A stretch of 64,000 nucleotides of DNA, taken from the NCBI GenBank assembly GCA_019828565.1, contig JAHDYR010000015.1, positions 423,605 through 487,604 of the forward strand. Direction: 5' to 3'. The translations under genes were made by a program, and so were the position numbers. This stretch comes from Carpediemonas membranifera BICM. Its lineage: Eukaryota > Protista > Fornicata. Below, one piece after another: positions 1,175-52,744 of the stretch; position 1 is the first letter of the stretch, and each line of letters opens with the position of its first letter. Below the pieces are notes generated by a model that saw only the letters and a list, made by a program, of their open reading frames with translations, did not search any database and was not told where the DNA came from.

Positions 1175-1282
1175 TGTCAGCCATTTATATATGAGATACG
1201 TATTTGATACGGTCTTGATCCGTCCAGCTCGACACCCTTGTGTCGAGCTCTCTTTGTAAAGTCTTTTTCCTTAGTGATCACA
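1175..1282 (+). repeat. G1 5' LTR (108 bp)
   Basis: Direct repeat of 7503-7610; TGTCAG...GATCACA. Confidence 0.97.
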
Positions 1283-1302
1283 GTAAGCTTACTTCCAAAC
1301 TA

Positions 1303-2271
1303 ATGGATAAGGGACCTTTATGTACACAGCCTGAGATTCACGCAGTCCTCTCATTTGCCGAGAAATTGGATAAGCATGTTCGCGCGGGCGGAAAGAGGCG
1401 CTTGCTTAAGCGACTCGGACCCGCGGTGACCTCATACTGCAAGGCGATGGGTACTGATATTACCAGAAAGTATCAGGCCGCAAAACATCACGATGATGGC
1501 TCCAAAAGAACGAAGCACGAACGCGAGGACATCGTATTCCAGGCGATTGTGGACATTGTTAAGCCCTCCGATGCGATCCTTGAGCGCCGCCTTTTCGACC
1601 TATCGACCACTGGTATCGATATTGGCCGCCTATCTCTCTATATCGACCGCTTCGCTTCCCGCCGCCGTCTCATTGCACCCACGGGCAAGGATTCAGTCCT
1701 TCGCGGCCAGTTTTTGCGCGGAATCCAAGACGAAACGCTCAGAGAGGAGGTTTCTCACGCCTCCAAGGGTCTGTCACTTGACGCGACCTTTTCGACCGCC
1801 CTCCTGACATGTAAGCGTCTGGAGGAAGCAATCAAGCTCACTTCAACGTCCAAGCCTGCCCCTGCTCAAGAGCGCGAACGCTCTAAGCAGTCCGCTGTCC
1901 GCAAACGCCCCCCGCGTGAGCAGCGCGAGCCTCAGGATCAGCCGCGCCAAGACAAGCGGCAGCAACACCAGCCCCGCCAGTATCAGACGCACTTCCACCA
2001 GCAAGGCCAACGTCACGGTCAGCGTCAGCAGCAGACGCAACACCACGGTCACCAGCGAGACATCGTATGCTTTAACTGCGGCAGGCCGAACCACCGCGCT
2101 TTCGAATGCACCAGAGAGAAGGCCGTGTGCGCGAAGTGCGGCAAGTCGGGGCACCTAGACAAGTTCTGTCAGGTAAACCCCAGATCATGCTTCTCTGTCT
2201 CTGTTTCTACGTCGGCGGCTGAAGGCCAGCGCTCCCCTACCCGTCGTGAGTGCCGTCGTCCCTATGGGTAG
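1303..2271 (+). CDS. gag: G1 Gag with two CCHC zinc knuckles
   Basis: CFNCGRPNHRAFEC and CAKCGKSGHLDKFC; first ATG after the LTR is at 1303. Confidence 0.92.
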   Translation: MDKGPLCTQPEIHAVLSFAEKLDKHVRAGGKRRLLKRLGPAVTSYCKAMGTDITRKYQAAKHHDDGSKRTKHEREDIVFQAIVDIVKPSDAILERRLFDLSTTGIDIGRLSLYIDRFASRRRLIAPTGKDSVLRGQFLRGIQDETLREEVSHASKGLSLDATFSTALLTCKRLEEAIKLTSTSKPAPAQERERSKQSAVRKRPPREQREPQDQPRQDKRQQHQPRQYQTHFHQQGQRHGQRQQQTQHHGHQRDIVCFNCGRPNHRAFECTREKAVCAKCGKSGHLDKFCQVNPRSCFSVSVSTSAAEGQRSPTRRECRRPYG

Positions 2272-5268: not shown

Positions 5269-5297
5269 ATGGCGCCCAGAGAGAGTCACAATCTGAT

Positions 5298-6626
5298 TTA
5301 TTCAATGGCACCAAGGCTGTCACCAAGCTCAAAGAAGATGCCGTCATGCTCCCAGCGCCGACGAACACGACGCCATAAGTTATGCTCGTTGAGATAACGA
5401 GTGACAGGCATGGTGCGGCAAAGATCCTGGGTCAGGAAGGTCAGTGACGGCAGCGGATAGCCCGAAAACTGGACGAGCAGGATGAACGACTCCTCCTGGC
5501 GGGCGTTCTCGTAGAGCTCGATGTGCTCTTTGACCTCCACCACACCGTACGCGGCGGACGTGTCCGTGAGCTGGAGCGTGAACAGCTCCTTGTTCATGGC
5601 AAGCTCCATAGCCGGGAGATGCTCAAGCCGGACACAGGTCCAATAGGCCCGAACGAAGTCGCGGGAGCGGGTGGCGGTCAGGCGCGAGGCACCGCGGTTC
5701 TCAGCCGCCATAAGCAGCGAGAACATGGCTGGGTGTCGGCCTGCCATCACCACGCGCTTGAGGAGGTCCACCACCACATCACGAGAGACCGTGGCACCCG
5801 GCTCTCGAGTGCGCTTCAGCGCCAGGAGGGCTCCCTCAGCTGTGGCGACGTGGTTTGTGGCAAACCGGTCGCTCGTCCCGCCCTGGACCAGAGCCGCGGC
5901 TACGGCGCGAGTGTCTTGGACACCCTCCATGGAGCGCTGGAGAGCGCACCCGATGGCCGTCACCTCCGCGAACCGACGAAGGATGTCGGCAGAGACGTAA
6001 GCAGCCGTGACCTCGGTCATAGCGCTGCCGAAGAGCTTCCCGGTCTGAACTCGGTCGAGGAGGGCTGTGAAATTGACTTCGAAGCAGTTGGAGAAGCGAG
6101 CAGTGCTGATCTCCGCAAAGGTGGTGCGGAAGGTCTCGACCTGACGCTGCTCGCGTGCCGGAAGAGGTTCGGCGGGCTCGGTCGGCTCGGCGACGGTCAC
6201 AATAGCCCTAGGGGTTTCGACATTGGCGCGGTAGCGGGTCTGTCGGTGGAATGGGCGGACAGGGACCTCTACGACACGCTGGTTGAACTCAGCGCCCAGC
6301 TCACTCGTGCGGGTGATTGTGGTCTGAGCAGATTCGGGATGGCAGTCGGTGATGTGCCGTCCGGAGCGTCGAGGTCGGAGAACGGTGCGATCGGGAGCTG
6401 AACCAGCTTCTTGGTGCGAAATGGCATCACCATCGGTGTTCTCAGCGGTGTTTTCAGTGGATGGAGGCGTGTGAGAACCTTCAGTAGCTTCCTGGGAGCC
6501 GTCACCATTCAGCAGCTCGACATGCTTTCGCTTCAAGGCCTGAAGATCGGAGATGAGCACACCAGTAGGATTGGCCGTCATATACTGGTCGATTGCAGCA
6601 AAGAGTTCCTCCTCTACGTTTGTCAT
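5298..6626 (-). CDS. G1 antisense accessory protein (unknown domain plus C-terminal chromo-like domain)
   Basis: Long ORF convergent on pol, inside the LTRs; first ATG at 6626, downstream of TTATATAA; similar to 31530-32366 and 37525-37928. Confidence 0.8.
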   Translation of the reverse strand: MTNVEEELFAAIDQYMTANPTGVLISDLQALKRKHVELLNGDGSQEATEGSHTPPSTENTAENTDGDAISHQEAGSAPDRTVLRPRRSGRHITDCHPESAQTTITRTSELGAEFNQRVVEVPVRPFHRQTRYRANVETPRAIVTVAEPTEPAEPLPAREQRQVETFRTTFAEISTARFSNCFEVNFTALLDRVQTGKLFGSAMTEVTAAYVSADILRRFAEVTAIGCALQRSMEGVQDTRAVAAALVQGGTSDRFATNHVATAEGALLALKRTREPGATVSRDVVVDLLKRVVMAGRHPAMFSLLMAAENRGASRLTATRSRDFVRAYWTCVRLEHLPAMELAMNKELFTLQLTDTSAAYGVVEVKEHIELYENARQEESFILLVQFSGYPLPSLTFLTQDLCRTMPVTRYLNEHNLWRRVRRRWEHDGIFFELGDSLGAIE

Positions 6627-7502
6627 AGCGCCGTTTGAAATCTGGGAGGCGTCCCAGATTTGATTTACATGTATACATGAGTTATATAATCTCAGGAGGA
6701 CACCCACCGCGCAAGTTACAGACGCTGAGCACGCCTGTATAGCCAATACTGGCCAAGGGACAGCCGTTCACGTATTCTCTCGCGCGTTTTATGCCGAGAC
6801 GAGATCTCGAGGAAAAGGGGAAGAAAACACCTCCAAGAAGTGATAATGGACAAAGTTTATACGAAGAACGTGGTTTTGATGTTGGTTATTCATGATGGAG
6901 CTCGTATTCTGGGCACAAGAAGTCCGAGCGGAGACGAAGAGAAGAAAACTCCCGTATCTCGCCAAGGAAGCGGAATTGGAGCTAGTTAACTGCATTTTTG
7001 AAGCCTATGTAAGAAATAGCGGAAGAGGAGCACAAACCGCCAACTATTCCGAATCAAGCCGAATGCATGACATAACCTGCACGGTTTGATGCAATCAGAC
7101 AGAACACTGGTATGTATCGACTACTAGGAGGGGCAGGATCCCCAGGTAAGATACCCATGACACAGCGCGCTTATTTAGTGGTACCACGAGTCTTTTCGAA
7201 TCTGTAGAATCTTTGCGCAATCTAGAAAATCTTTAGAGAATTTCCGTGGGTGGACTCCACGCCGGGCGATGGCTTAGGACGCTATGTCGTCAGCCTAGTC
7301 AACGGATACTATCCGGCGTACACGCAAGTCCCGTGTGCGCGACGGTCAGCCCTCTAAGTTGAACTTAGTTGGCATCCCCGGATCACTGGTCATTCCCCAG
7401 CGATCGACGGTTATAGGGTCAGCACTCTTGGGCTGTTCCCCCAAGACCTGATTAACAATGGTATCCTTTTCGTGATGCTCTTAACAGAGCATGGGGGGGA
7501 AG

Positions 7503-7610
7503 TGTCAGCCATTTATATATGAGATACGTATTTGATACGGTCTTGATCCGTCCAGCTCGACACCCTTGTGTCGAGCTCTCTTTGTAAAGTCTTTTTCCTT
7601 AGTGATCACA
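7503..7610 (+). repeat. G1 3' LTR
   Basis: Identical to 1175-1282; preceded by GGGGGGGAAG PPT. Confidence 0.97.
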
Positions 7611-8176: not shown

Positions 8177-11100
8177 CTATTCGAGGTGCGCGAACCATTC
8201 GCACCTCGTCACAGCTGTCTCCTGGTCGAGCCGCACCGCTTCGGCGATGTAGCTCTGGAGGGAACTCTCGGACTTCCAAGTACCGAGGGCCATGACCACT
8301 GGAGTGGGCATTCCGCGAAGTACAGCGTCCGCTGCGGCCCCGCGACGGAAGCTATGGGATCCAACTGGGTCTCCAAAGACCTGCTTCAGCTTGTCTTGGA
8401 GCATAGCGGGGGGCAACGGCCCTCGGTCCAGCCTCGACCCATCGAGGTTGGGGGACTTCCAGATGGTGGCGTCTCTGTCCTGGCACCAGCGCTGCAGGTG
8501 AGCCATGAGCATCCCTGCCGGATTGAGCGCGCCTTCGACCCACGGGATGAACTTCTTAACTGCGCGAAGCCCTGTCTTGGTGGAGTCGATGGTGATAGAG
8601 ACGCCGAGTCCTGCTTTCACCCTGATATCCCGAGGAGTGAGGGGTAGGATCTCACTGCGCCTCGACATTGTTGCGTAGGCAACGACGCCGAATAAGAAGG
8701 CTTGGTGGAACTCCTCGTCGCGGCCGGCGAGTTTGGGGATCAGGCGGTGGATGCGTGCAGCCCGCACTGGGACCTTGCGTTGCGGCCTGGGGACTGTAGC
8801 GCGCTTCGCTTCGGTGATGAATGCCTTTTGAGCAGCTGGGGGTGCCCACGTTGATACCAGGGGTGCAAACCTTACCACCAGCGAGCCCCGGTGCGCCAGA
8901 CGGTCTGGGCCTACTAGCTCAGCCTCGCGAGCGAGCCACGCCAGGAATGTGTCGCGGTCCGATGCCGGGTTGGCCTCTCGGAAGGTCAGGAACTGGGAGA
9001 CGACACCCGCCGTGTCACGCCTGGTCGTTGCCACGTAGCCTTTGAGCTCGTCTAGACCTAGTACTGCGTTGAAAGCGGCGTCGTCGGCACGAAGACGGCG
9101 AGGAGCCGCGGCTTTTCCCCCACGAGGATGTTCTGGAGCTCTGAGTCCTTCATGTCCTCCGCGTAGACCCTGAACGTTCTCTTGAAGGGGGAGAGGCCCT
9201 TGATGCGGCGTACCGCCTCGGACTGGACGTCGGGCATCACCACGACCACTGCAGACTTGGTATGCCTCGGATGTGAGGCTGGTGAGGCGCGAATGAGGGC
9301 CAGTCGGTTGGCTACGGCTGGAAGAAGGGCGTATGGTGGTGCTGCGAAGACTCTCTTGCTGCGCCACTCCGAGCTCATGCCGCTCTCGGCCAGCGTGAGC
9401 GAACGCTCGACGAAGCCGGGAAGTAGTAACTCCTTGTCCCTCCCACCAGTCACGTCGACCTCGAGAGGGCCCCACTCCTCCAGTATGGCAGCGAGGATCC
9501 CTCGTGGTGTCCGCCATTCCAGTCGCTGGTATCTCGACAGAGCATCTGCGGAGACATTGAGGTGCCCGCTGACGTGCTGGGCTCTCAGTGTGATCTGGCA
9601 GGCGGCCAAGCGGGAAAAGAGGGTGAGACAAGCGTCCTGGATCATCGGCGGGGCTCGCGTTGATCCCTGCTTGTTCAACCAGGCGCAGGCGTTGCTGTTG
9701 TCGATGAATACGGTGATCTCCCCTGTCCGTTAGATGTGGAAGGAGGGTCTCCACGGCGTTCGTCGCCGCAAAGAACTCTTTCACCGCAATGGACTCGTTC
9801 TGGAGCGGGCTGTTGGGGGAGACGGAGGAGGATACGATCGTCTGCTTGCAGCCGTCCCTGATAATGGCAGCTAAGCCCTTTTCTGAGGCGTCCGACTGGA
9901 TGTGGATGTCGATTGCCGGGCTTGCGCCCCACATGCTGATCAGGGAGTCGAAGGAGCGGGGAGGATGATCTTCGCTGCTCAGCAGTTGCTTCCAGTACGA
10001 TAGGGCCTTGAGGACGGCTTTCGTAAAGCCTTTCTCCGTCTCGGTGGCTGTCTGAAGAGGTCTCAGCCATGCGCGGCCGTCGGGGAAGCACAGAGATGCG
10101 AAGGATAGCTTCCCGATGAGGGATTGCCACCTCTTGTTGCTCATATTGCCTTCTATCAGCGCACTCTCGACCAATTGGCGGTATCTGCTGCGCTTCTTCG
10201 AGTCTAGGGAAATGACCCGAGCAGCTGAGTCGATGCGCATGCCGAGGTATGTCAGGACTGTGGTGGGCTCTAGGACTGACTTGTCGTGGTTGATGATAAA
10301 GCCTAGCTGATTCATGATGTCCAGGAGGCGCTGGCGCTCGCGCAGAAGGGCCTTCTTCTTCCCGAAGAATAGAAGGTCGTCCAGATAGACGGCAACTCCT
10401 ACACCGCGGCAATGGCGCTTGATAATCTTCGCTACGGTAATCATGATCTTCTGGAAGTAGAATGGCGCCGCGGACCATCCGAATGGGAGGACTGTGAACT
10501 GATAGTGGACGCCGCGGTGAATAAAGCCTAGGAGGGACTGCGATGATGGGTGAATGGACACGTGGTGGTAGCCTGCATGGAGATCTAGCGACATCATCAT
10601 GTCTCCTGGCGCAAGGCTTAAAACTGCTCTCTTGGCACCGAACAAGCGGAACGTACGGCGCTCTTTGGAGACCTTGTTGAGCGGTATGAGGTTGTGGACT
10701 GCTCTCCATTTGTCTGTACCCTTCGGGACTGGAAAGAGAGGACATGTGAGCTTCGGTGGTGATGAGACGCGGTGTATGGCACCCGATGAGAGCATTTCGC
10801 GCACCAGCGGATCGAGCTTGGCTAAGTCCTTCTCTGGGAGATGGAATATTCGAGGATTGCTCGGTTGTTGTGTCAGTTCGATGGGTATGCCGTCGCCAAC
10901 CCAAGAGACCATGTCGGATGGCGCTCCCAAGCGCCGCCACGCGGCCACTGAGTGGCGGAGAGAACCCGCTCGACGGGTTGTGGGGAGTGGTGGTTCGGTT
11001 GATTGATGGTCTTGCACAATTAGTTTTTTTCTGGGGCGCTTATCGCTCTTGGGGGCGACTCTGGCACTGGAGCGGGCCTCTGCGATGAGGACGGTGAGGC

Positions 11101-11515
11101 TCTCGGAATCACGGATCCTGGAACGTCGGGCTCTGACGTAGTCCTTGACTGCGTCGGCGTAGTGAAAGCCATTGATGTCCTTAATGAGGAGAAGCTCATG
11201 ACGGAGCATTAGCTGAAGCTTGATCGTCTCGGTTGTCCAGCTCGGGTGGAGGACGATGTCCATGTAGAGCATCTGCAGCCATTCGGACTCGTTACGCATG
11301 GCTAGTGAGTCCGGGTGGCGCCACTCCAGCGACATTAAATCTCGAAGCGTCAATAACTCGCCTGTTAGTTCGTTGATGCGCTTCTGCGGATCTGGGATCT
11401 TCTCTGCTTCAGGCGTGCGGTCCCCGGTGTTGTTCTCGGTTTCTTCAGCCATCTGGCCGTAATTGATTCGATCCCGATTCGTTCGGCTCGAATAAATCGA
11501 ATCAGGCAGATCCAT
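8177..11515 (-). mobile_element. Y1: DIRS-order retrotransposon coding region (gag, RT/RNase H, methyltransferase-like, tyrosine recombinase)
   Basis: LDLHAGYHH...LPFGW...YLDD RT; SDAS RNase H; EWRTP...WGPLEVD...FAAPPY MT-like domain (ORF 9058-9678); R..K..HSFRRG..W..Y recombinase. A frameshift near 9720 swaps the overlapping frames. Termini not identified. Confidence 0.92.
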
Positions 11516-11892: not shown

Positions 11893-14718
11893 TCACGTTT
11901 TACGATCAACCTCACTAAGGTCCGCGATCGTGCTGGAGCAAGCACTCCTCAATGCTGCTCCAGGCCTCAACGAGGCAACAGAAGTGCTGTAATCGAGGCG
12001 TAGGACGTCCTCGATATAGCGTATCAGTGATTTGGTATCCACCCAAGTGCCCTTCGCGGCCACGACGGGAATGGGTATGCCCGCAAGGACCAGGTCCGCC
12101 GCGCTGCCGCGGCGAAGGCCATGAAGCCTTGCCCTCGAGGAGCGAAGGATCTCCTTAATCTGGTCCTCAAGCTCCGAGAACGCAAAAGACCAGAGTGGGT
12201 CCTCCTCCCCAGCGTGGGCGTCCATCCGATTAACGACGACCTCGGAGAGCCAATGCGCAGGGTCCAGCTCGCCATCGACCCTTGGTACCAGCTTCTCTAT
12301 GACCTCACGCCGCGTCTTTGTGCCCTGTATTGCCACGCGCAGCCCTCGCCGACCATCAGTGGACACGTCCCTCATCCGCAAAGAGAATATTTCCATAGGC
12401 CGCGATGTGGTGGCGTAGATGGTGAGCGCGAAGGCGAACGCCTCTCTCCATAGGGCCTGCCGGCGGGCCTCCGGCGTGGAGGCGTGGAGTCTTGCAGCTA
12501 ACATCTGGGCCCTGATGGGCAGGGCTGGGCCCCTCGGTCGACCAAGCGCGTCTCTCGCCTGCTCGATAACCACCGCCGTGCCGTCCACGGGGATCTCCCA
12601 GGGGACAACCCGGTCGAAGAACCTCACTATTAGGTTCCACTTCGACATGATGGTGGGGCGAGCCACCCTCTCCGCCTGGTCGTGTGCCCACATTCGAACG
12701 AGCTCGGTGTCGCCACGGGCCTCGGTGTGGCTGTCGCGGAAGTCAGCGAACTGCTGCAAGACCCCGGCCACGTGTCTCTTGTCCTTGAATCTGGCTAGCA
12801 TGTCACTGCTGACGGCCTGGTCGAAGACCTGATGACCATGAAGAGGGCCATGAGCCTGAACGTCCCGTCCGACTGGAGCGGTGTGACCTCCGACAGGTCT
12901 GCCTCCTCCTTCCGAATCCTGAAGTAGAGCCGGTGCTCCGAGAGCTCTCTCAGTGCCATCGCTGTTGGAGAGCGGCTGTCCGACACAAGCAAGACCAGAG
13001 CATCCGGACATGCTGAGGGGGAGATGGGATGGTCCATCTGGAGGCGCTGCAACTTCGAATAGACCTCCAGCAGCAGGCTGAACGGGACTACTGCCAGCCA
13101 CCTGCCGACTGACCAGTCCTTGTCCATGAACTGTATGATCCCGGAGGCCTCTGTCGCGTCCTGCTTTGCTCCAAGCCACCCGGAGGGCCATATCTCTCTT
13201 TGAACCGGGCCCCACGTCGTGATTATGCGCTCGAGCATCCGTCTGGGTGGTGATAATGTCTCGGATCGAGATAAGGCGTCGGCAGTGACGTTGAGGTGAC
13301 CTGACACGTGCACGGCCCTGACCCTGATCTGTCGCCTGCTGAGCGTGGGCAGCAGGGCTCGGAGGGTCTGGTCCACCACCTCTGGCGCCTTTGTAGACCC
13401 CTGGTGGTTCCACCAGGCCACCGCCGCAACAGAATCCGAGAAGATAGTGATCTCGCTCGGGTCTCGAAGGTGTTGGAGAGTGAGCTCCACAGCCTGGCAG
13501 AGGGCTCGAAACTCTAGCAGGGTGATATGCTCCCCCTTCGGGGCCGAAACAGCGAAGGTGTGAGGGTCCTGGCCTGGGATCAGGAGGACTCCGCCGAGGC
13601 CGGCCTCCGAGGCGTCCGTCATCACCGTAACCTGAAGCTTCGGGGACATGCCCCACAAGTGGGTGAGCTCCAAGAAGCTGCGGACTGGGGAAGGGCGACT
13701 CAGGCGGGCTTGCCAATCGATGAGGGCCGCCTCTGCCTCGCCATGGACTCTCGTCCTGTATCGGGCCTTGATGTTGGCCAAGCAGCGTTGGATAGGTCTG
13801 ATGGCCGCCCGGCCCTCTGGCCAGACTATCGACGCAAAGCCCAGGTTCCCGAGGAGTCTCTGCAGGCTGTGGAAGGTGACGCCCTGCTGGAGAGCCTCCT
13901 CCACTCTGGACAGGTACTTGTGGCGCTTCTCCTCCTGAAGGGAGACTCCATGCTTCCTCGAGTCGAGCACGAAGCCAAGGAAAGTCGTCGTGGGCGATGG
14001 TGTCAACTGGGATTTCTCCCGGTTGATTACGAGGCCTAGGTCCGTAAGCAACCGAACTATCCCCGGCATCGACGACTCTAACAGGGCTTTCGGACCGCAG
14101 AAAAGCCAGTCGTCTAGGTATATCGTCAGGTTGATACCTGGGAAGGCACGCGCGACAATCTGTCCGGCGGTCATCATGACCCGTTGAAAGTGGTAGGGTG
14201 CCGCGCTCCATCCAAACGGCAGGACGTTGAAGCAGTAGGGGCGCCCGTCTACCACAAAGCCCAGGAGTGTCCGGTCCTGCGGTCGGATGCCCAGCTGATA
14301 GTACCCCTTCGTCAGGTCGATGCGCGTCATGTAGTCGTTCTCTCTCATCTGGCAGATGGCTTGCCTGACGCCTCGAAGCCGGAACGACCTTCTCTCGAGC
14401 GACACTGCATTGAGTGACCTCAGATCGTGAATGAGGCGCGTCTCTACAGGTGTCTTCGGCACGGTGAAGATTGGCGAGATGAGACTCGGTGCCCGGCACG
14501 GGCTGGCCGCTCCCAAGGCGAGCAGCGTCCTTAGATGATCTCGGAAGGCCTTTCGATCCCTCGGCCGCGGTGAAGGAAGGCTGGGGTGCCTCGGCCGCGC
14601 ACTCACCGAGATGGGGATACCCTCTCGTAGCCACGAGACCACCTCGGATGGCGCGTGTAAGCGCTCCCAAAGGGTCCAGCGGCTGTTGATGCACGGGAAG
14701 GGTCTCATCTTCGGGCAC
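11893..14718 (-). CDS. Y2 tyrosine recombinase ORF (overlaps the whole RT ORF)
   Basis: TSRPMEI...GTKT...HGLRRGS...GTW...RYI catalytic residues in the last ~250 aa. Confidence 0.88.
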   Translation of the reverse strand: MPEDETLPVHQQPLDPLGALTRAIRGGLVATRGYPHLGECAAEAPQPSFTAAEGSKGLPRSSKDAARLGSGQPVPGTESHLANLHRAEDTCRDAPHSRSEVTQCSVAREKVVPASRRQASHLPDERERLHDAHRPDEGVLSAGHPTAGPDTPGLCGRRAPLLLQRPAVWMERGTLPLSTGHDDRRTDCRACLPRYQPDDIPRRLAFLRSESPVRVVDAGDSSVAYGPRPRNQPGEIPVDTIAHDDFPWLRARLEEAWSLPSGGEAPQVPVQSGGGSPAGRHLPQPAETPREPGLCVDSLARGPGGHQTYPTLLGQHQGPIQDESPWRGRGGPHRLASPPESPFPSPQLLGAHPLVGHVPEASGYGDDGRLGGRPRRSPPDPRPGPSHLRCFGPEGGAYHPARVSSPLPGCGAHSPTPSRPERDHYLLGFCCGGGLVEPPGVYKGARGGGPDPPSPAAHAQQATDQGQGRARVRSPQRHCRRLISIRDIITTQTDARAHNHDVGPGSKRDMALRVAWSKAGRDRGLRDHTVHGQGLVSRQVAGSSPVQPAAGGLFEVAAPPDGPSHLPLSMSGCSGLACVGQPLSNSDGTERALGAPALLQDSEGGGRPVGGHTAPVGRDVQAHGPLHGHQVFDQAVSSDMLARFKDKRHVAGVLQQFADFRDSHTEARGDTELVRMWAHDQAERVARPTIMSKWNLIVRFFDRVVPWEIPVDGTAVVIEQARDALGRPRGPALPIRAQMLAARLHASTPEARRQALWREAFAFALTIYATTSRPMEIFSLRMRDVSTDGRRGLRVAIQGTKTRREVIEKLVPRVDGELDPAHWLSEVVVNRMDAHAGEEDPLWSFAFSELEDQIKEILRSSRARLHGLRRGSAADLVLAGIPIPVVAAKGTWVDTKSLIRYIEDVLRLDYSTSVASLRPGAALRSACSSTIADLSEVDRKT
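12795..14708 (-). CDS. Y2 RT / RNase H / methyltransferase-like protein
   Basis: IDLTKGYYQ, LPFGW, YLDD, MTDAS, HVSGHLNVTADALSR. Confidence 0.92.
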   Translation of the reverse strand: MRPFPCINSRWTLWERLHAPSEVVSWLREGIPISVSARPRHPSLPSPRPRDRKAFRDHLRTLLALGAASPCRAPSLISPIFTVPKTPVETRLIHDLRSLNAVSLERRSFRLRGVRQAICQMRENDYMTRIDLTKGYYQLGIRPQDRTLLGFVVDGRPYCFNVLPFGWSAAPYHFQRVMMTAGQIVARAFPGINLTIYLDDWLFCGPKALLESSMPGIVRLLTDLGLVINREKSQLTPSPTTTFLGFVLDSRKHGVSLQEEKRHKYLSRVEEALQQGVTFHSLQRLLGNLGFASIVWPEGRAAIRPIQRCLANIKARYRTRVHGEAEAALIDWQARLSRPSPVRSFLELTHLWGMSPKLQVTVMTDASEAGLGGVLLIPGQDPHTFAVSAPKGEHITLLEFRALCQAVELTLQHLRDPSEITIFSDSVAAVAWWNHQGSTKAPEVVDQTLRALLPTLSRRQIRVRAVHVSGHLNVTADALSRSETLSPPRRMLERIITTWGPVQREIWPSGWLGAKQDATEASGIIQFMDKDWSVGRWLAVVPFSLLLEVYSKLQRLQMDHPISPSACPDALVLLVSDSRSPTAMALRELSEHRLYFRIRKEEADLSEVTPLQSDGTFRLMALFMVIRSSTRPSAVTC

Positions 14719-32366: not shown

Positions 32367-32439
32367 CGTCAGGGTGCGAGTGATGCGTTCTGAGGCTTGC
32401 ACGCGGTGACTATATAACCTCACGGTTGATGTTTGTTAC

Positions 32440-38878: not shown

Positions 38879-41800
38879 GCCACGAGAGCTGCAGAGTAGT
38901 GACCATTACCGGGTGAAGACCCACCCAGCGTGATGTCGCGGCCCCGGATCGCGGCCGACACGATGTCGCCATCGGTCAAGCGCTTCCTGCCGAGCTTGAG
39001 GTGGGCCCTCACACCGGCAAGCGCGACCTGGCAGTGAGCCACGAGAGCCAAGACCTGCTGGGTCAGCTTCACGTCCTGCACTACGGCTGCGTCGTTCAGA
39101 CGACCTTGCTCAATAGCGTCAAAGATTCGCTGGAGCGGCAGCTCGATGGAGTTGGTGTAACCTTCCAGGCGTCGGGCAACCTCGGCCTTGATGTCGTGGG
39201 GCATCAGAGTCGTCATCGTCAGGGTGCGAGTGATGCGTTCTGAGGCTTGCACGCGGTGACTATATAACCTCACGGTTGATGTTTGTTACTTACAGATTGT
39301 CGGTGACCATGCGCTTGCGTCCACGATACTTCTGAGCGCGAAGGGAACGACAAACGGACGTATGGGCAACAATAAGTGGCCTAGCCAGATCGTCATCACC
39401 AAGTTCGGTGATTTTGGCACGAATTTCCTTCAGAACGGCCTCTACGGCTGTGTTGTCCGACATCAAATGAGTTGACGGCGACATATCCTGCACATTTCTC
39501 GGAAACGGTCGAAGGAACAACTAACAAGGTCATCTTAGTCTTCAAGCATGCATTTATTGTCGGTAATAAGGCATTAGGAGCTTCCTAGTGCTCCTTCCGG
39601 TCAGTTTGATGTTGTTATTCAAGTACAGTTGGACGCAGAAAATTAGAAGCCTCAGAACTCCTCAACGGAGCCGAATTGGAGCTTCTAAGTACGTTTTTCG
39701 GCGTCTGTGTGATTATGAGCGATAAGGGCTCAGCATTGGCAGTGTTTGCTAGAGCAATCGTTCTTGGCCTTCGAATTACATGGAATGGCATATAACACGT
39801 ATAAGGTTTGTGAAGACGGCCTAGGAAGGCCGTGGAGGGGCAGTGGTAAGCCTCTCCGTCACGTTTCACCATTTTTGAAACAGAGCTCACATAGCGGTAC
39901 CGCAGTTAGATCATGATACCATCATTTTGATTTCGTTCAGCTAGATGCGAAAGCACTCAGGCCATGGGGTTGCCAGCCCTATGAGTCACCGTTGGCGGTC
40001 GGGTGGCACCGTCCAGGCCTTTGGTGAAATGCTGACGTCAAGTCTCTCTGTCATGCCTATACCAGGCATGGAGGGGCAGTGTTGTGGGTCCTACCCAAAG
40101 TTACACAGATTTACGTTATATTTAATAGTCAAGGAGTTTCTCCTCGACACCCTTGTGTCGAGTCTTCTCCTCAGTAAAAGTTCAACACCCATTGAACCAC
40201 AGTGGGCATCGCGAAGCCCAGGCCACCATGCTTTGCCGGCAGCCCCAAGGCCTGACTGATGTCTGGCGACAGGGTGCGGCCAAGCACCTTCCCAACGACG
40301 TCGGATAGGGTGGACTGGCAGAAGGTCTCTGCGGGAGTGAGCACCTCGGGGGTGGGATCGACATTACGCATCAAGTGTGCAATCTTGGGGAGGACACAGA
40401 ACTTGATCATCGACAGGGCTGGGCCAACACCCTCCGCACCGACATCCTCGCTGAAGTCGGCGATGGCCTTGAGGGTCAGGGCAGCCTTGTCAACAACTCT
40501 CTGCACTTCTCCCCGGACGAACGACTCCGGACCGACGGGAACACCGGTGATCACATGGGCCCCCACTCTACGGACATGGTCGGGGCGATCCAGGTTGGTG
40601 TCATGCCCGGCACCTTGGATGAGCGCGACGCACTTGGGCAGGTTGAGGCTCATCCCCACTTGGGAGAAGAGCTGCTTAGCGGTTTTCGCGATCTCATCAG
40701 CCGATGCCCGGTCGGTCAGGATGTACGTGTCGTCCTGGTACGCGACTACACGGACGTTGTAGATGCTGCGTAGACGATCCAAGACGGGCTTCATCCCAAG
40801 GGAGAATAGAAGCGGAGACAGCGGGTCACCCTGCTGAACCCCTTCCTCTGAACGAAGGACGACTCCCGACGTGGAGAGGAGCAGCGACGAAGAGTACTGC
40901 CCCTTCACGTAGTCAACCAGGGCGGGACAGTAGGTGCTGACACATCTCAGCAGGAAGTCCCGGCTCAGGGTATTGTACGCGTTCGACAGGTCCAGGGATA
41001 GGACCGTACCACCGTCGTCGAAGTGACGCCTGGTGATGGCGACCATGCGCTCCAGACCACAACTCTCTCCCAACCCGAACTGGTCAACGAAGACCTCCTC
41101 GCGGAGCTTCGGCAGGACCGTTTCGGCAGCAGCCTTGGCCGCGATGCGGCGCAGGGCTTCTCCCATTGCTACCGGACGGAGCTTGCCGTTCTTCTTCGGG
41201 ATGGGTACTAAGATGCTGTGGCTGAAGATTGCGTAGTTATTGTCACCATCGATGATCGCCTGCACGATCGGCAAGAGAGCTGCGACGAGCTCCTTGCGCA
41301 TGATCTTGTAGGCTACCCTCAGGTGGAGGAAGCTCAGGCCGGTGGGTCCGGGAGCCTTGTCGGCGGGGAGGGACCCAAGAGCTTTCTTGAGAATCTTTCG
41401 GGAGATGGTGATAGACGATAACGGGGCCGCTGGCACGTCTGACCAAGAGAAAGCCTCGAGGCCATCAGGGGAGGGGTGTGCTTGCAGCTCCGCCAACTCG
41501 CGGTCGACCTCCTCGTCCGACTTGGACTGCTCAGGGCACATGAGCGTATTGACTGCTCTTGCCAAGTAGCCACTCTTGGCTTGAAGTAGTGCACGCTTGC
41601 TCCTGCGGGTGCGGGCCCGGTTGGGGGCGGACCTAGGGGGACGGCGAGAGGAGGCGACAAAGGTGTCCAGCGTTGCTGGGTACCTCGCGAGCTGGAGTAG
41701 ACGTTCCGTCTTCGTGGCAGGCTGGGCCGAAGCGACATCTGTCAACCGGTCGACAAGACCGCGTGACCAGGCGGTCGCCTTCCGGGTTGAGGGCTTCATG

Positions 41801-43380
41801 CGACCCAGTGATAGGGCTACTTTCGGAGGGAGTGGAGTGGCGAGGGATGACTCGAGCTGTGAGCCCAGGTCGGCGGCTGGCGAGACATGAGTCTGGGAGC
41901 CACCCTGCGCGACAAGAGGGGGCGCACCAGGCATGTGGGTGGCGGAGAGAGGGCTCTGCGGCTGTGTGCCCTCAATTGAGACTCGGTCTCTGGGGTTGGG
42001 TTGCTCCGCGTCAGATCCGACACTGAAGCAGTCTATCACCGATACTGCCTGTGGCTCCGGAGCTGGCTCGGCTTGCGTTACTCGAGCCGCGTCGACGATG
42101 GAGGCAGAATGATGGCGATGCTGAGGCAGGGGCGAGAGGGATGGCGTGCCAATGTTGCCCTCGTGGAGAGGCGAGGGAAGCGGGCCAGTAGTCCCTACAT
42201 CAGTTAGAGAGGGGGTGGGGGACGCCAACGGATGCTGCGGCCTTGGCAAGGCGCCCTCTGGATCCCTGACGAAGACGAACTCGTGGTCAGTAAGCGAGAT
42301 CAGCCTCTTCGCGTAGCGCTGAACTCTATCGATCGTCTTGACACTTTGGATCTTCGGCCAACGAGCTGGTAGCTGCCCTAGAGCAGCCGTCGCCAACCTG
42401 CAGAGAATCGCATAGAAGTCAGATGTCTTGATCTTCTTCTTGGGCGTCTGAAGGATCTTACGTAGCAGTTCATTGTCTCTAAGGACGTGTAAAACGCCCT
42501 CTTCGGCAAAACCAGGTCTGTAGGAAGGTTGTTGGAATCATTCCGTGGTATTCTCTCTGAATCGTGTTGGCCTCTGCGAGGAAAGCCAAATAACGACGAT
42601 GAACGGATCTAGAATCGTCTGGAGGCGGATTGGGAAGCTCATTGCCGCCCGAATTGCCTTCCATCGTGATGTTCCGTTAATCCACTTCGCACAAACTTTT
42701 ACTCAAAGCAACATTCACCGTGGAAGGCAGCGAGAACAGCGTCGGCATGGCGCGTCCGTGTGTCTAGAGGCTCGGGGCTTGTCGGGCGACAATCCAGGCG
42801 TGCTGGGGGACACTTTGATGACCTCGTCAAATCTCGGCAGAACATGTCCGAAAGCAGCAAAGGTGTCGCAAAACGCAACAGGTCGCAAAGAGTAAGCAAT
42901 ATCAGCGCAAAAAGCAAGTTATTGCAGCTGGAACGCGCTGTAACCGTGCGATCCCAGCACGGCGATAGCGTTCCGAGCTTCAACCTGCCAATCATCGAAG
43001 ATGAGGCAGTTGCCGCGCCAAAGAGAAGCAAAAACTCGTTCGTAAATACGAACTTCGTTCTTGCCGCCCATTAGCGAAGCAATGTCCTTCGCCCAGCCAT
43101 TTGCGGTGTTGACCTTTCCATCCTGGCGAGCCCGGCGGCCGCAGCGGCCATCCAGTGACACTACTGCAGGTATAACGGACACGTTCCAGTAAGCATACCT
43201 GTCCACCTTCGCTTTGTGCGAATCGTGGAAGTAGTTGGACACGACAACGTCGATGACAGTGGGGTTCTCACCTCTCTCGTTGTATGCGAAGATGTCGGCC
43301 CTGGAGTCGTTGAATGTGCTGTCGGGGTTCTTGGTGAGGCGGTCATTGTGGCGGAGCCAGTGCTCTGGCTGAGTGGGCAC
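38879..43380. repeat. ~4.5-kb duplication of 32029-36599 (G3 3' end with LTR at 40080-40201, R-A 5' part, R-B 3' end)
   Basis: Near-identical sequence and ORF tracks; differences seen are a 70-bp deletion, a few 1-nt indels and a substitution. Confidence 0.97.
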
Positions 43381-46300
43381 CCCGTTTGCCTTGAGCTCGG
43401 CAACAATGTCTATCCTTGATGGCGTCGTGGCGCTTAGTGGTCTTGGCGTTGCCATGGAGGCACTTGCAGGACACAACGTGTTCAGGGGTGGCAGCGCAGA
43501 GCTTCGGGGAGGCGCCCTCAACGACGCAGCCGTTGGCCGTATTCGTCACTGATCTCAGCGCACAAATAGGGCAGTACCGCACATGCGGAACGAAGGTCGG
43601 CAGACCCAGCTGCTTCCTAATGGCGGCCTGGAGGGGCCGGCCCGTCAGGTTGGTCGAAGGGTCGTGGTGCCGGAGGGGATCAAAGCTGATAGCCCTTCCG
43701 ATGACATTCGGTTAGGCGTCGACCGTTGTCTCCTTGGCAATATTGATCAGAAGTTTCTCCACCAAGATAGACTGCGTCTTGCCGGGCAGGGCCAGAAGTT
43801 CATCCTTCGAGGCCGGCCAGCCATTGAAAATGCCATGGCACTCCCGCTCGACCGTGGCAAGGGTCGAAGAGAGCCCATAGTCCTCCCCGAGAGTCGCCAG
43901 CTGACGCACAGCAACCAAGCGCGCGCAGGGCCAGACAACTGTAGGGAGCTGGAGGGAGAGACCGCCTGCCTTCATGGGCAAGGCGAGGGTAAGCAGTCCC
44001 GAGGTTGGGATCTCGCGGTCGAGGATCTTCGAGAGGCAGCGCAGGAGGGGCCCCTCGCAGAAGGCCTGGGCGGCCGCAATGCATCCCTGGGTCGGGTCGA
44101 TGTTACGCATGACGTGTGACAGCTTCGGTAAGACGCAATATTTCACCATCGCGAGTGCAGGGCCCACGCCCGCTACTCCGACTGTGGCAATGAAATCGCT
44201 GAGGGCTTCAAGAGTTTCCTCAGCCTTCGTCAACATCTCAGACGTCTTCTTGATGACGTAGCCGTCCGGGCCGATGGGGACGCCGGTCACGACATGCTGC
44301 CCCTTCCGCTTGATGTGGCCGGGGCGGCCTGTGTTGGTGTCCTTACCGAAACCCTTAACCACGACACGGCACTTGTCCGGGTTAAGTGTCAGCCCGACCT
44401 GGGCGAATAGTTCTTTGACCGCGGCCGCTAGTTCGTTGGCAGCCGACACTGTAGTCAGAATGTACGAATCATCCTGGTACGCGACCACGCGGACATCATG
44501 GACGGACCTGATGCGGTCTAGAACTGGCTTCATGGCAAGAGAGAAGAGCATAGGTGAAAGCGGGTCTCCCTGCTGGACGCCTTCCTCAGACCGGAGAACC
44601 ACTCCGGACGTCGAGAAGAGGAGGGCGCGGCTGTATTGGCCACGAAGGTAGTTGGAGATGGCAGGGCAGTAGGCCCTCACACACCTGGCTAAGTAGTCTC
44701 TAGAGACGGTATTATAGGCGTTCGTGAGGTCCAACGACAGGACTGCCCCGCCGTCGTCATAGTGCTGACGCATCACCTGATTAAAACGAATTCTCGAATA
44801 CCCGTCGTTTACGCCACAGTGATTAATCACTCCCTATGGCTACGAAATTCGACGTAAGTTCCCTTCCACTGCTCAACTCCGCCGCGAAGGAATACAAGCG
44901 GGAACTTCCTCATGCAAGATTTCCTACATCGTTCCTCAGATGCCTAAGCATCAGCTCGCAGGAGTTCTTACGGGCCAATTGGAGACCCACCTCTGATTAT
45001 AAGACCTTCGAGGACCTAGAAGACGATGTATGTCCCGATGCGGTAATCCGCAGCGCCATTAGGCGCGAGATGAAGCTCTCACTTCCCATCACGCCCCCAA
45101 GCACCTCCACGCCACCCCCCAAGCAGGCAGTAGCCCGTCTAACCGCCGCTCTCGAAGAAGACCTGTTTATGCTCGCTGAAGCGGCGGCCGCGGCCTTTCC
45201 TGAAGGCCCGATGGCCGCGGCTGCACAGCGCCGCGCAGAAGCCGTATTCACGGCTGCAGTAGCCGAGATCGACCACAACGCCCCGGTTTATGTGCCCCTC
45301 ATCAACAAGTTCAACCCAGATGTCCCCTCCGCGACGACGAGTACGTCGCCGAGGTCAACGCAGCCCTGGCCCCACCCAAGCCGCCCGATGACGAGGCTGC
45401 CGCCACCAACAACTCCGACACGTCCAGTGACGAGTCCGACTGGGACGACGTCACCGACATTCGCGCCTACCTCCATGACGAGGCCGACGACATCGTAGCC
45501 GCCTGCTCCGTCACACTCATGCCGTCCCTGGACGTCGGCGCGCGCATCAAGTCCATCAACCTTCCCGGTGCACTCTATGGCAAAGCATCCAAACATCGCT
45601 CAACTATTGCCGCTTTGCGCGAGTTCATCGATCTCGTGAACACTGATGCTTCTGCTCCTGCACTGCAAGCCATTCCTTGGAAGGTTCTCGCCGCAAGAGT
45701 CAGAGAGCTTGCACTTAAGGGATTCTCCGCCGAAGCAAAGGACTATTTCGACTCCTACATCATAGATGATGCAGAGGACATCGATGACGTCCTTGATAAC
45801 CTTAGGGACCTCAAAGAGGACCACGACGGTTACATCGTCGTTCCTTGGAGAGCATTCCGCACCGGCCAGCCCCCCGCAACCCCACGGTGAGCAAGCGACA
45901 GGCGGATCCCGCACACGCAAACCCATAGCCCGCAAGATCAGCGGCCCAGACCCGTATGTCCAGCTGAAAGACAAGGCGAACTACTACATCAACCCCACCT
46001 TCCGCCACTTCTGCGACTACCACGGATACAACTCGTCCCACGTCACTCAGGCGTGCCCTCATCTGAAGACACAGCGCAGTGCCGCCCCCCAACCATCGCG
46101 TCCTATTCAACCAGCTGTTGTGGTGCCAAGCCCAAGAAGGCCCCTGGCCACCACAACAACCCTGACCGACCTGCAACAACGACCACCCAAGCGCCCAAAC
46201 GCAACGCGAGAGCCCCTAACCCAGCGGCAGGCTGGACGCGAAACAAGGAGACGAACCGGCTCGAGCGCCTTAGTCAATCCATCAACGAGGTCGACATAGA

Positions 46301-48713
46301 CGCCGAGTCCGACACCGATGAGTCAATCGACGAAGTCGACACGTCAGCGCAGCGCGAAAACATCGGTAAGCCGATCTACCACGACATCCTCGTCAACGGC
46401 ACGAGACTGCGGGCGAAGCTCGACCCGGCAGCCGCCAAGACCTGTATCTCGGAGGCCACGTTCGCCACGCTGAAGGAGGCCGGCCCGGTAATGATCACAA
46501 ATCATGCTTACACGCTGAAGAGCGACCTTGCGAGGACACCACCGCCGTCATAGCCGAGCTCGTTATCGACGGCATCGTACCAAACGCTGTCGAGCTGACG
46601 TGGACCGTACCAGTCATCTCCGGGGAGGCCCACAAGTTCCTGTTCGGGGCAGACCTCCTCCGGCACCTAGGCCTCATGTCGGACACGGGCATCAACATTC
46701 AGCTACCACCGTCAGCGGAGGACCCCGCCGACGATGTCACACCGGCCCAGAATCAATACATCGACGAGGTTGACTCGGAGACTGACGACCTGCCGGACGA
46801 CGTCTCGTCCTTCGCCACGCCAACCTTCGACATTGACCCCTCGTTCCCTCTACACGACGAGCTACTCGCTGTGCTCCAGGCCAACGCCGACGTCTTCGAC
46901 CCCAAGCTGCCTCTCGGCGGCGCCGACATCGCGGAAGCCACCATTGACCTGAAGCCGGACGCCATTCTGCCACAAGCCAACCCACGCGGCATCCGCGCCG
47001 ACTGGCTTCCCGAGATCAAGCGACAGCTCCATGAAATGTACGAAGCCCAGCTCATCCGCGACGCACACGGCCCAGTCTCTAGCCCGGCTGTGATTGTCCA
47101 GAAGAAGCCCGACGCGGACGGACGCCGCCCACTACGACTTTGCGCAGACTACAGGGCCCTCAACGAGGCAACTGTGACTGACGCTTTCCCCATGACAGAT
47201 ACCCGCACGCTCATCAAGGACCTCGTCGGCAGCAAGTACTTCTTCGGTCTAGACCTTCGCCAAGGGTTTCACCAGATGCCATTGAAGGATGCCCACCGTT
47301 ACCTGTCCGCGGTGCGGGTCCCGGGCGAGTTTTTCGAATATATGGTCGCCCCGTTTGGCCTAAAGAACCTCCCCGCACAATTCCAGCGGGCCATCGCCAA
47401 CGTCCTGCGCCCGGTATACTCAGAGGGCGTCAGGAACTACATAGACGACATCTTTGCTGGCGCGCCATCGCCCGAGGTACTCGTCATGCGCACCCAGCGC
47501 ACGCTCGCTCTACTCAGTGACAAGAACATCAGGCTGCGCGCCGAGAAGTGTCATTTTGGCTACCAGACTCTCGACTGTCTCGGCGAGATCGTCTCCGAAC
47601 ACGGTCGTCGCCCTCAGCCCTCACGCATTGACACGATCAAGAGCCTCCCACGCCCGACGACCACGCACGAGGTACGTCAGATCCTCGGCCACATCAACTA
47701 CGTGGCAGATTTTATCCCTGACTGCCAGCGCATCCTAGCGCCCATCAATGGCCTCCTCCGCAAGGACGCCAAGGTCGTGTGGACTTCAGCACACCAAGAG
47801 GCTATCGCGGCTGTTCTGACACAGCTCGCCTCTGAGGAGTCACTCGCCATACCAGACCTCTCCAAACCCTGGCGCCTCGAGACGGACGCTAGTCTCCTCG
47901 GCCTAGGCGGCATACTGCTACAACAGCAAACGCCCACAGACTGGAGAGTCGTCGCCTACTTCTCCAAGGCGTTCTCGGACGTTCAACAAAGATGGAGCAC
48001 CTACGACCAGGAGATGTATGCTCTGATATACTGTCTGACACGTCCTGACATGTACTCTCTCTTCCTGGGCCACCCCGATCTGACCGTGTTCACCGACCAT
48101 AAGAATCTGATGGCACTCCACCGCATGGCCGCTCACAATCGGAAGCATCGCCGATGGCTACTGTCGTTCTTGGAGTTCAGACTCAAGATCCACCACGTCC
48201 CGGGCGAGTCACGGCCGACTTCTTAAGCCGTTTGTACGGCAATTGCAAGTGCGTAAACGAAGAGTGTTTAATAGGGGGTTTAGACCACATATGCATAAAT
48301 GGCCGAAACCAAATATCTGTATCTAATTCTGTATCTATAAATATATCTTGCGATATTGCTATCTATGGCCGTGGTAGGGTATGATAGCAACAGTGCCTCC
48401 CTCTTCTTTTTTCTTTGGAGGTATTGGAGCTCTCTTTGCGCTTATACTTTTGCATAAATGCGTAGCGTAATTCTTTGAGGCATTTGGGGATGAGAATCGG
48501 TATTTGTACAATGAAGGTAGTACTAAGCAGCTATCAGTATGTTACCTTCAAATCACGTGTTATTGAGCCTCAACAACGCTTCGTTGGCGAGTTCTGGCCG
48601 ATTTTTCCTTCTGTTGGCGGAAAGCTGCAAGTGACGCCTCAAAACCTTGTCGAAACATCTAAATAACAACATCAGTGTCTTTGAAGGGCTCAATGACCGC
48701 TATTGCTGTGCTT

Positions 48714-51700: not shown

Positions 51701-51755
51701 TTCCTATCACACCGGCGCATGAAAGGACAGAGGAGTTAAGAAGGGCAGAATGACA
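48714..51755 (-). CDS. pol: G6 Pol (uninterrupted PR-RT-RH-IN-chromodomain)
   Basis: LLDTGSS, IDLSSGYHQ/YQDD, ITDAS, DTMGP/TDSG, VQWAGFEPEEASW; same frame as gag, after one TGA. Confidence 0.96.
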   Translation of the reverse strand, partial: CHSALLNSSVLSCAGVIGNTKVTVLLDTGSSHNLLARHVVSKISPHSHRLQLANNQWVETLGSASVDLTLPPNEIFHYSLSTMFEGYVLEESPFDVIIGFPAMCRLGLVDLLINPSLPSEHIEDSVDALDRSLSCAGVVPDRYKSIIEQFSDVFGDLTLEPSKLRPFSLQLKDGYKLCSSRPYPAPTWKQQEIEAHVTKLLALGIIERCSSPWGSPVVIVSKKDTAKTRMCVDYHRLNAETVDFDFPLPRIDETLDHLAGKRFFATIDLSSGYHQIAVDPASRDFTTFTTHLGRFRYSRLPFGLKQAGSHFQYAMETALDTLLYSKCLVYQDDVVIFAECEDDLIANIKEVLQRCRELNLRVNLDKSQFGLRKFEYLGWLITPEGKQIDPARIDALTKMKPPSTVSGVRSFLGLVNFFHDYLGSDFATISAPLYEITKHKQFSWTHEAQSAFDTIISRLTSAPTLVHYNPRAKLKLITDASDYGVGGVLLQDDKPLMYLSKALTGAQKRWPTIEKEMYAVVYCLSKAERYLRWAHFTIATDHHNLTRMHQSANAKVARWSLLLEQFSYDVIHVPGIANGAADGLSRVCTALTNSEENPHAASIKEHHTLGGLHLSVNRTVQQLRANGHAWPSMRQAVADVISHCPVCQKTVPTRPMSSFDLTLQAPFPMDTLCIDTMGPYPIDGEFQHILVMVDLFSRYVEMTPIRSTTAEEAASCVVNHWFLRHGVPRRIITDSGSQFKNNTFARLCDRHAVDLHFTAPYHHQSNGIVERVNREINAHMMARRLEIKHLDRWSQHIPFVQAILNSARHASLGVSPIEIVFGRELVLGNPASDTPLNLRRAAEAAIATAKSKQAERVQAVLSQATGRITPALPEYILLSYPSFRPTKTVARYRGPLRVTGYECNEFNTPATLIVEDLNTHKSLRVHTSRCHPFERGSLTLRELKALAATDSDEFIVSEVSAHRKTKSGYEFEVQWAGFEPEEASWLPWSEVRSLEAIDKYFTQHPELEGKIKR

Positions 51756-52583
51756 TCACGTCGCAGGATTTACACGATCCTTTGACACATCATCTGCGCG
51801 CTTCTTGCGGCACTCGGTGGCGACGTGGCCGACCTTTTTGCAATACCCGCACAACGGTAGACCCTTCTTCTTTGCAAAGCACTCGTCTTCAGTGTGTCCT
51901 TTCTTGCTGCAATAGGAGCACTTACTGGGCTGGGTGTTGGGTCGTTTTGTGGGCTGATGTTCAGCCGGGCGGGCAGATCTCACGACAGGGCCTTTCTGGG
52001 TGAAGGGTAGGGCGATCTTCAAGGCACGCTCTACGGCATGTGCGTGTTGTATCGCGAGAGCAAAGGTGTCATTGAGGGACTTGTCCTTCGTGATACCGAT
52101 CAGTTGGTCGTGGAATGCGTGGATGTGAGAGAAACCACGGATGAAGGCTTCGCGAACCGTGTAGGTGCCGACATCGGCCTCAGGTATGATCTCCAGCAGT
52201 GTTCTAAACAGTTGGACGAAGCTGACGACGTTGGCAGGGCTGCGACCCTTTGCCTTGCGGTTGAAGGCGTCTGCTTTCGAGAACTGATCTTCGGGGGTTA
52301 CATGGGAGAAAACGGCTTCACGAGCGGCCTTATCCTTGTTCTTCTTGCGGAGCTTGCTTCTTGTCTTTTCGTCGGCGTCGTCGGGGAAATCAGGATCAGG
52401 GACGGAGGAAAGGCGGAAGGGTTTGCCTGACATCTCAAGCTCGCGGAGGACGTTCTTCGAGAGTAGCTTATGGAAGCGTACCTTCGAATGGCGAAGGGAG
52501 TAGTCCGCGAGGTCCATCATAAACGTTAAGACGGCGGTAAGCGACAGGATGCTCAAAACGGGTGTGTCTTTCGTACTAATCAT
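51756..52583 (-). CDS. gag: G6 Gag
   Basis: CSYCSKKGHTEDEC and CGYCKKVGHVATEC. Confidence 0.93.
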   Translation of the reverse strand: MISTKDTPVLSILSLTAVLTFMMDLADYSLRHSKVRFHKLLSKNVLRELEMSGKPFRLSSVPDPDFPDDADEKTRSKLRKKNKDKAAREAVFSHVTPEDQFSKADAFNRKAKGRSPANVVSFVQLFRTLLEIIPEADVGTYTVREAFIRGFSHIHAFHDQLIGITKDKSLNDTFALAIQHAHAVERALKIALPFTQKGPVVRSARPAEHQPTKRPNTQPSKCSYCSKKGHTEDECFAKKKGLPLCGYCKKVGHVATECRKKRADDVSKDRVNPAT

Positions 52584-52744
52584 ACAGAAATATTTCTGTA
52601 CGGCAATTGCAAGTGCGTAAACGAAGAGTGTTTAATAGGGGGTTTAGACCACATATGCATAAATGGCCGAAACCAAATATTGCTCTTTTACTCTAAAAAT
52701 GAACATCATTTTGATTAGGCCTGGAACTTTTTGATTGACGACAG

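Follow-up and report, generated by a model that had tools for sequence, protein, structure and literature searches.

The 64,000-nucleotide stretch of the Carpediemonas membranifera BICM genome analysed here (GenBank assembly GCA_019828565.1, contig JAHDYR010000015.1, positions 423,605 to 487,604 of the forward strand; hereafter the window) is a nest of retroelements, and in six of them, termed G1 to G6, the 5' long terminal repeat (LTR) runs into a perfect, family-specific palindrome of 12-18 bp that begins on the terminal A of the LTR. All six sites are 5' LTR junctions of Ty3/gypsy chromovirus-type elements. What is conserved at these junctions is the self-complementarity and not the sequence, and, judging from comparison of the sequences, we regard the chances as about even that the palindrome is the site at which minus-strand synthesis is primed and that a sister RNA, cut where its own copy of the palindrome ends on the 3' side, supplies the primer.

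The class of the elements follows from their coding regions. Pfam matches for gag (CCHC), protease, reverse transcriptase (RT), RNase H, integrase and chromodomain are present in G1, G2, G3, G5 and G6, and in these five elements the domain order is gag, protease, RT, RNase H, integrase, with the chromodomain at the C-terminus, unlike the order in Ty1/copia. G1, G2, G3 and G5 lie on the plus strand, whereas G6 lies on the minus strand and is nested within G5; G4 is reduced in the window to its gag gene (36702-37538). All six elements have short LTRs (53-160 nt), and where LTR pairs are present (G1, G3, G5 and G6) they have TG...CA ends, a 4-bp target-site duplication (TSD) and purine tracts. 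The junctions of these four elements were set by the LTR pairs found in a self-comparison of the window. For G2 and G4 the window contains only the 5' LTR, and copies elsewhere in the genome were used to define the junction. The LTRs, palindromes and purine tracts are as follows.

1175-1282, plus strand: G1 5' LTR, 108 nt, TGT...ACA; 3' copy at 7503-7610; TSD GCAC
1282-1293, plus strand: G1 palindrome, AGTAAGCTTACT; gag ATG at 1303
7493-7502: G1 purine tract, directly before the 3' LTR
16998-17079, plus strand: G2 5' LTR, 82 nt; genome copies start at 16998
17079-17090, plus strand: G2 palindrome, AATACTAGTATT; ATG at 17101
27407-27528, plus strand: G3 5' LTR, 122 nt; 3' copy at 33230-33352; TSD GTGG
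27528-27539, plus strand: G3 palindrome, AGTACTAGTACT; gag ATG at 27550
33220-33229: G3 purine tract, directly before the 3' LTR
36600-36684, plus strand: G4 5' LTR, 85 nt; solo or 3' LTR copies in the genome match exactly 36600-36684
36684-36695, plus strand: G4 palindrome, AGTACTAGTACT; ATG at 36702
44766-44818, plus strand: G5 5' LTR, 53 nt; 3' copy at 55684-55736; TSD GTGC
44818-44831, plus strand: G5 palindrome, AGTGATTAATCACT, 14 bp; ATG at 44836
52583-52600, minus strand: G6 palindrome, 12-bp core AGAAATATTTCT (52597 down to 52586); ATG starts at 52583
52597-54283, minus strand: G6 5' LTR, 160 nt, split by an insert; 3' LTR at 48233-48392; TSD AACG

G2 is interrupted after 20589, and the end of its LTR is fixed to within 4 nt: 25 of the 52 LTR-end 22-mers of this type in the genome continue into the palindrome, while the remaining ones either have a partner about 4278 bp upstream of them or are solitary. 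At one other locus (G000:C58:39493-40458) three G2-type LTR ends occur on one strand, 472 bp apart, i.e. as a small tandem array of an LTR-bearing unit. Many copies of the elements have identical LTRs, which indicates that they moved recently and did so carrying the palindrome site.

An unpublished preliminary description of the window, made from its sequence alone, had placed a palindrome at each of the six junctions, starting on the last A of the LTR. All six were confirmed at their coordinates, including the extension of the G6 palindrome, which reaches three further bases into the LTR and thus comprises 18 bp in total. The register is strict, as a scan of the LTR junctions over offsets from -30 to +40 demonstrates: in 11/11 elements a palindrome of at least 12 bp starts at offset 0, the last base of the LTR, and at no other position. 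In the whole window there are 18 distinct palindromes of at least 12 bp versus a chance expectation of about 16; the palindromes at these junctions account for six of the 18. The palindrome region is also present in contigs of four public sequencing runs, two of which are apparently one data set filed twice. Another palindrome, at 38577, follows a purine run and a TG...CA stretch of just 28 nt and has nothing gag-like downstream, and was set aside.

Evidence on what is being maintained comes from other families in the same genome. Our census covered 356 kb of the genome (20 further loci and 30 tRNA loci) plus coordinate tables, and revealed five further families at the 20 other loci with the same arrangement, their palindromes being AATACTAGTATT (in two LTR contexts), ATTAACGTTAAT, ATTAGATCTAAT and ATTAGTACTAAT; a wider scan added a family with a 10-bp palindrome core. 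In an alignment of 13 junctions 78/78 pair cells are Watson-Crick, and this value falls to 21-60% when the partner is slid by one to three columns. Among these 13 elements two-sided, i.e. compensatory, changes are found at five of the six pair positions, with up to four pair types, and one-sided changes at none. Moreover, the central four bases are self-complementary in every one of the 13 elements, although they occur in eight different versions. As pairing is kept while the bases change, self-complementarity itself appears to be under selection, just as the preliminary description had proposed.

The feature extends beyond this genome and is confined to one part of the tree. A profile search with the RT-RNase H region found 79 metagenome contigs, and the three closest relatives among them (identities of 61%, 40% and 35%), which are L051, L052 and L055, carry a 12-bp palindrome after CAC or CCAC. 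It precedes RT by about 1500-1620 nt, a spacing like that seen in this genome, and is followed by an ATG within 5-21 nt; in L055 the junction is fixed by a 298-nt LTR pair. Four more distant contigs with LTR pairs were handled in the same way and turned out to have ordinary sites of the initiator methionine tRNA (tRNA-iMet) type, TGGTATCAGAGC, so the method does detect normal primer sites. A FastTree phylogeny built from 83 RT-RNase H sequences places all 13 palindromic elements on one side of a branch with a support of 97. They form three sub-branches of this one clade (G2 with G5; L052 with L055; G6 with the G1 and G3 groups), and the earlier impression of two distinct pol lineages therefore has to be abandoned. 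A further contig, L114, adjoins the palindromic clade but is truncated before the 5' end of its element. Five metagenome contigs have a 10-bp palindrome, AGGTCGACCT, on the upstream side of RT; this palindrome was rejected as a candidate, as it nests inside an ordinary tRNA-primed clade; palindromes of at least 10 bp in a CA context are common by chance, about 48 being expected in the stretch scanned.

To our knowledge, only two priming routes are established for LTR retroelements, one using a tRNA and the other, of the Tf1 type, using the 5' end of the element's own RNA. Signs of neither were found at these junctions, in agreement with what had been noted from the window alone. The gag ATG follows 14-22 nt beyond the LTR end, and no TGG abuts any LTR or lies within reach of an LTR end. 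When the sites were compared with host tRNAs, the best complementarities were 5-8 nt, which is not above the level of shuffled sites, among 16 distinct tRNAs with 14 anticodons, a set that is incomplete for this genome. Regarding a Tf1-type complement inside the LTR, pairings are no better than with shuffled LTRs in 8/11 elements, and the remaining three have 9-nt LTR runs that need G-U pairs and are situated in an AT-rich TATA region upstream of the likely start sites. With no consistent complement found in the LTRs of these 11 elements, a Tf1-type primer site was rejected. The next 90 nt downstream do not contain a complement that is consistent beyond chance either (11 elements), and the sense strands of the ten complete elements hold no other Watson-Crick match of at least 8 nt to the palindrome, where about 4.4 would be expected by chance.

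In reverse transcription the right edge of the LTR is set by the position at which the 3' end of the minus-strand primer pairs. Thus, the 3'-terminal bases of the primer of these elements must be complementary to the sequence beginning with the final A of the LTR. These bases differ among at least nine families in one genome, which excludes a single host RNA and implies that the primer is encoded by the element; as the palindrome is the only complement to be found in the element's RNA, the palindrome itself would most likely serve as primer. The register at offset 0 likewise ties the palindrome to the start point of minus-strand synthesis. Based on these considerations we think it most likely that two co-packaged genomic RNAs pair through the palindrome to form a duplex of 12-18 bp, that one of the RNAs is then cleaved where the duplex ends on the 3' side, the probable nuclease being the RNase H that the element itself encodes, as it is in Tf1, and that the new 3'-terminal U, opposite the last A of the LTR, is extended through U5 and R of the partner RNA. 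If one ribonucleotide of the primer were retained, this would explain why palindrome and LTR overlap by one base. That this amounts to a third route for starting the minus strand, in which two genomic RNAs pair via a primer site complementary to itself and cleavage of one provides the primer on the other, is a proposal to which we assign slightly less than an even chance.

The sequences flanking the palindrome may contribute to its presentation. When the leaders were folded, the last ~25 nt of the LTR were predicted to pair with ~30 nt following the palindrome, the individual stems in the window being the following (dG, predicted free energy).

1255-1322, plus strand: predicted G1 stem, arms 1255-1276 and 1298-1322; 21-nt loop; dG -15.9 kcal/mol
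27498-27571, plus strand: predicted G3 stem, arms 27498-27522 and 27546-27571; dG -11.8
Plus strand: predicted G4 stem, arms 36654-36677 and 36702-36727
Plus strand: predicted G5 stem, arms 44795-44817 and 44836-44862

In general, the predicted stem has 13-20 pairs and closes a loop of 15-27 nt that contains the palindrome; in every case the gag AUG is covered by the 3' arm of the stem. The U5 end of each of 14 elements, including the three metagenome relatives, was paired with the downstream segment of every element; the cognate combinations had a mean of -13.1 kcal/mol versus -9.65 kcal/mol for the swapped ones (permutation P = 5e-5, about 1 in 20,000). The advantage of the cognate pairs is gone when the downstream windows are moved by 40 or 70 nt (P about 0.67), and controls shifted upstream give weak signals only (P = 0.05-0.08). 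The palindrome duplex is predicted at a dG of -10 to -18 kcal/mol. The U5-gag stem would display the palindrome in its loop and, as it covers the AUG, may switch the RNA between translation and priming or packaging. The three bases after the palindrome, located on the unpaired 3' side of the predicted loop, are mostly a pyrimidine followed by CC (TCC, CCC, ACC, CCA) and could be a determinant of cleavage or of nucleocapsid binding.

Several points weigh against the palindrome acting as site and primer at once. The mechanism is deduced from sequence, and the identity of the nuclease and the position of the cut are assumptions. Energy calculations alone predict the flanking stem, which in G6 is weak (dG -6.4), and a 12-bp helix would be hard to fit between two closed loops of ~20 nt, so that the stems would have to open. 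The comparison with host tRNAs covered 16 distinct ones. Finally, G-U pairs are wholly absent from the palindromes, a stringency unusual in RNA helices that the proposed pairing does not account for.

Retroviruses offer both a likeness and an alternative. They have a separate tRNA site of 18 nt, their dimer palindrome of 6-10 nt is located elsewhere in the leader, a stem between U5 and the leader encloses the primer site, and in HIV-1 U5 pairs with the AUG region. The elements described here resemble them in having a leader palindrome, which is predicted to be displayed in a loop, and a predicted U5-leader stem around the gag AUG that would enclose the primer site. The palindrome might be only a dimerisation or packaging signal of the retroviral kind, with an unrecognised primer acting at the same spot, which we consider unlikely. 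Retroviruses are well known to link their two genomic RNAs through palindromes of the 5' leader, the palindrome here is predicted to lie in a stem-closed loop, and the predicted gain in stability of the homodimer over two monomers is 12-17 kcal/mol, all of which would suit such a signal. A dimer signal, however, has no reason to begin at precisely the final base of the LTR in each of the families, the short distance between LTR and ATG leaves no other candidate primer site, and any primer would still have to match the bases at the LTR edge, which differ between families in one host. In retroviruses the dimer signal is separate from the primer site, whereas here there is no separate site and one sequence would serve both functions.

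The palindrome might also fold back within one RNA, which would be cut after it so that the resulting 3' end copies U5 in cis, a possibility that the preliminary description had raised alongside the pairing of two RNAs and that we now regard as distinctly improbable. The register and the 3'-terminal U would fit this scheme as well as they fit a dimer, and the 14-bp site of G5 is able to form a weak hairpin (predicted dG -2.8). Nevertheless, a hairpin calls for an unpaired centre, while the centre of the palindrome is always self-complementary whichever version it takes, and the predicted dG of the hairpin form of the 12-nt sites is about 0.

Priming by a host RNA, be it a tRNA fragment, an unprocessed tRNA or another small RNA complementary to the site, has very little probability in our estimation. 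Internal tRNA regions are indeed used by copia and some other elements, and the tRNA set compared was small; yet TGG is absent, the best tRNA matches are no better than those of shuffled sites, and the at least nine sites in one genome would need as many host RNAs, each with a perfect palindrome.

The closest known counterpart is found in fungi. The GalEa elements, which belong to Ty1/copia, have a 'Conserved Hairpin Site' of unknown mechanism (Donnart et al. 2017, PMC5445492), in which a 9-bp sequence after the 5' LTR forms a 10-bp palindrome of the ACTGATCAGT type if the final A of the LTR is counted (PMC5445492), and a second block, CHSeq2, 12-41 nt downstream, is inverse-complementary to the first apart from one A/A mismatch (PMC5445492). 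GalEa and the elements of C. membranifera both lack a primer site of the tRNA type as well as a Tf1-type complement within the LTR, and the register of their palindromes is identical; here, too, the post-LTR sequence is palindromic once the final A of the LTR is included. The feature is thus not without a published precedent. As GalEa is a copia element and the present ones are gypsy elements, the feature is probably convergent. There are also clear differences: the 10-bp site of GalEa is near-identical in 85% of its families, whereas the palindromes here comprise 12-18 bp and are family-specific; GalEa has CHSeq2 to pair with the first block, whereas such a second block was not found here; and, unlike in GalEa, the stem is predicted to form from the flanks. 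That the palindrome works in the GalEa manner, i.e. by pairing with an inverse-complementary block 12-41 nt downstream, is hardly to be expected in spite of the shared register on the final LTR A, as no downstream complement exceeds chance in 11 elements, none of at least 8 nt occurs anywhere in 10 full elements, and the pairing predicted involves the flanks and not the palindrome. A later paper on terminal-repeat retrotransposons in miniature (TRIM) of bivalves cites the GalEa work, and our literature search brought up no description of this feature for gypsy elements or for Carpediemonas. New in comparison with GalEa are hence the other superfamily, the longer, family-specific palindromes, the lack of a second block and the predicted U5-AUG stem.

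A symmetric DNA site for a dimeric protein, such as a promoter or downstream element or a binding site for a host factor or integrase, would account for perfect symmetry without G-U pairs but is scarcely credible, since a protein site would keep its sequence, whereas here the bases differ between families at all but one of the six positions, where as many as four pair types occur, and only the symmetry is kept.

Among Ty3/gypsy elements the nearest precedents are the Tf1/sushi-type chromoviruses (Tf1, Tf2, Tj1, Maggy, Skippy and Cft-1), which are tRNA-independent and self-primed (PMC7175516, PMC4600332), and in Tf1 RNase H cuts an 11-bp RNA duplex to give the primer (PMC7175516). The likeness to our elements comprises the superfamily, the integrase with a chromodomain, the use of the element's own RNA as primer in place of a tRNA, which for our elements is proposed, and a duplex length close to the one suggested here. 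The primer of Tf1, however, is formed by the first 11 nt of the transcript, with the complement inside the LTR, whereas the site described here is complementary only to itself. Further chromoviruses that lack a recognisable primer site have been recorded, among them SM-Tcn1, a gypsy element in which neither tRNA priming nor self-priming could be identified and which has a T-rich conserved stretch (PMC2864245); a palindrome is not reported for it.

Several further features of the elements were observed. The 53-nt LTR of G5, in spite of its size, has a TSD, a purine tract and a 3' copy that is 98% identical (one mismatch); promoter, R and U5 must all lie within these 53 nt, which suggests a tiny initiator-type promoter. 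A motif resembling TGTAAA, AGTAAA or ATTAAA is located about 20-30 nt before the end of every LTR (e.g. 1265-1272 and 27505-27512), and if it is a poly(A) signal U5 would consist of merely a few bases. The otherwise different LTRs of G1 (1228-1247) and G3 (27475-27494) have a 20-nt hairpin sequence in common, CTCGACACCCTTGTGTCGAG, which with one change is also carried by L006. G1 (5298-6746, minus strand) and G3 (31530-32423, minus strand) contain antisense open reading frames (ORFs) in the interval from the chromodomain to the 3' LTR. These ORFs are homologues of each other (25% identity over 260 aa, E = 5e-9) without a Pfam match. Contigs of runs X1 and X2 skip 34 nt at 32410-32443, which are bounded by GT..AG on the minus strand, and the antisense gene of G3 thus seems to have a spliced mini-intron. 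The insert that splits the 5' LTR of G6 (52679-54204) is a 1.5-kb DNA transposon of the Tc1/mariner type that encodes DDE_3 and HTH domains (ORF 53201-54130, minus strand) and has short terminal inverted repeats and a TA duplication.

The remainder of the window is likewise rich in mobile elements. DIRS-like retroelements with RT and tyrosine recombinase are located at 8177-11515, 11893-14718 and 22336-26184, all on the minus strand, the third of which has 166-nt direct terminal repeats with ends that are not TG...CA, and other RT fragments also lie between the gypsy elements. A tRNA-Leu(AAG) gene is situated between retroelements at 15515-15596. Moreover, a segment of ~4 kb is duplicated (32029-36027 and 38879-42808), with blocks of 100% identity 6779-6850 bp apart; as the segment includes the 3' LTR of G3, there is a third copy of this LTR at 40079-40203.

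The way in which reverse transcription is primed is a step that defines each LTR retroelement. Neither of the established routes is present in the gypsy clade described here, a whole clade with recent activity in a free-living metamonad. Tools for LTR annotation that insist on a primer site of the tRNA type will overlook such elements or score them wrongly. If the proposed mechanism is true, dimerisation and priming would be one act at one sequence, and the fungal GalEa copia elements may have reached the same solution independently. Taken together with the unexplained site of GalEa, the junctions described here make a dimer-primed route testable, a route that would link genome dimerisation to the priming of reverse transcription.

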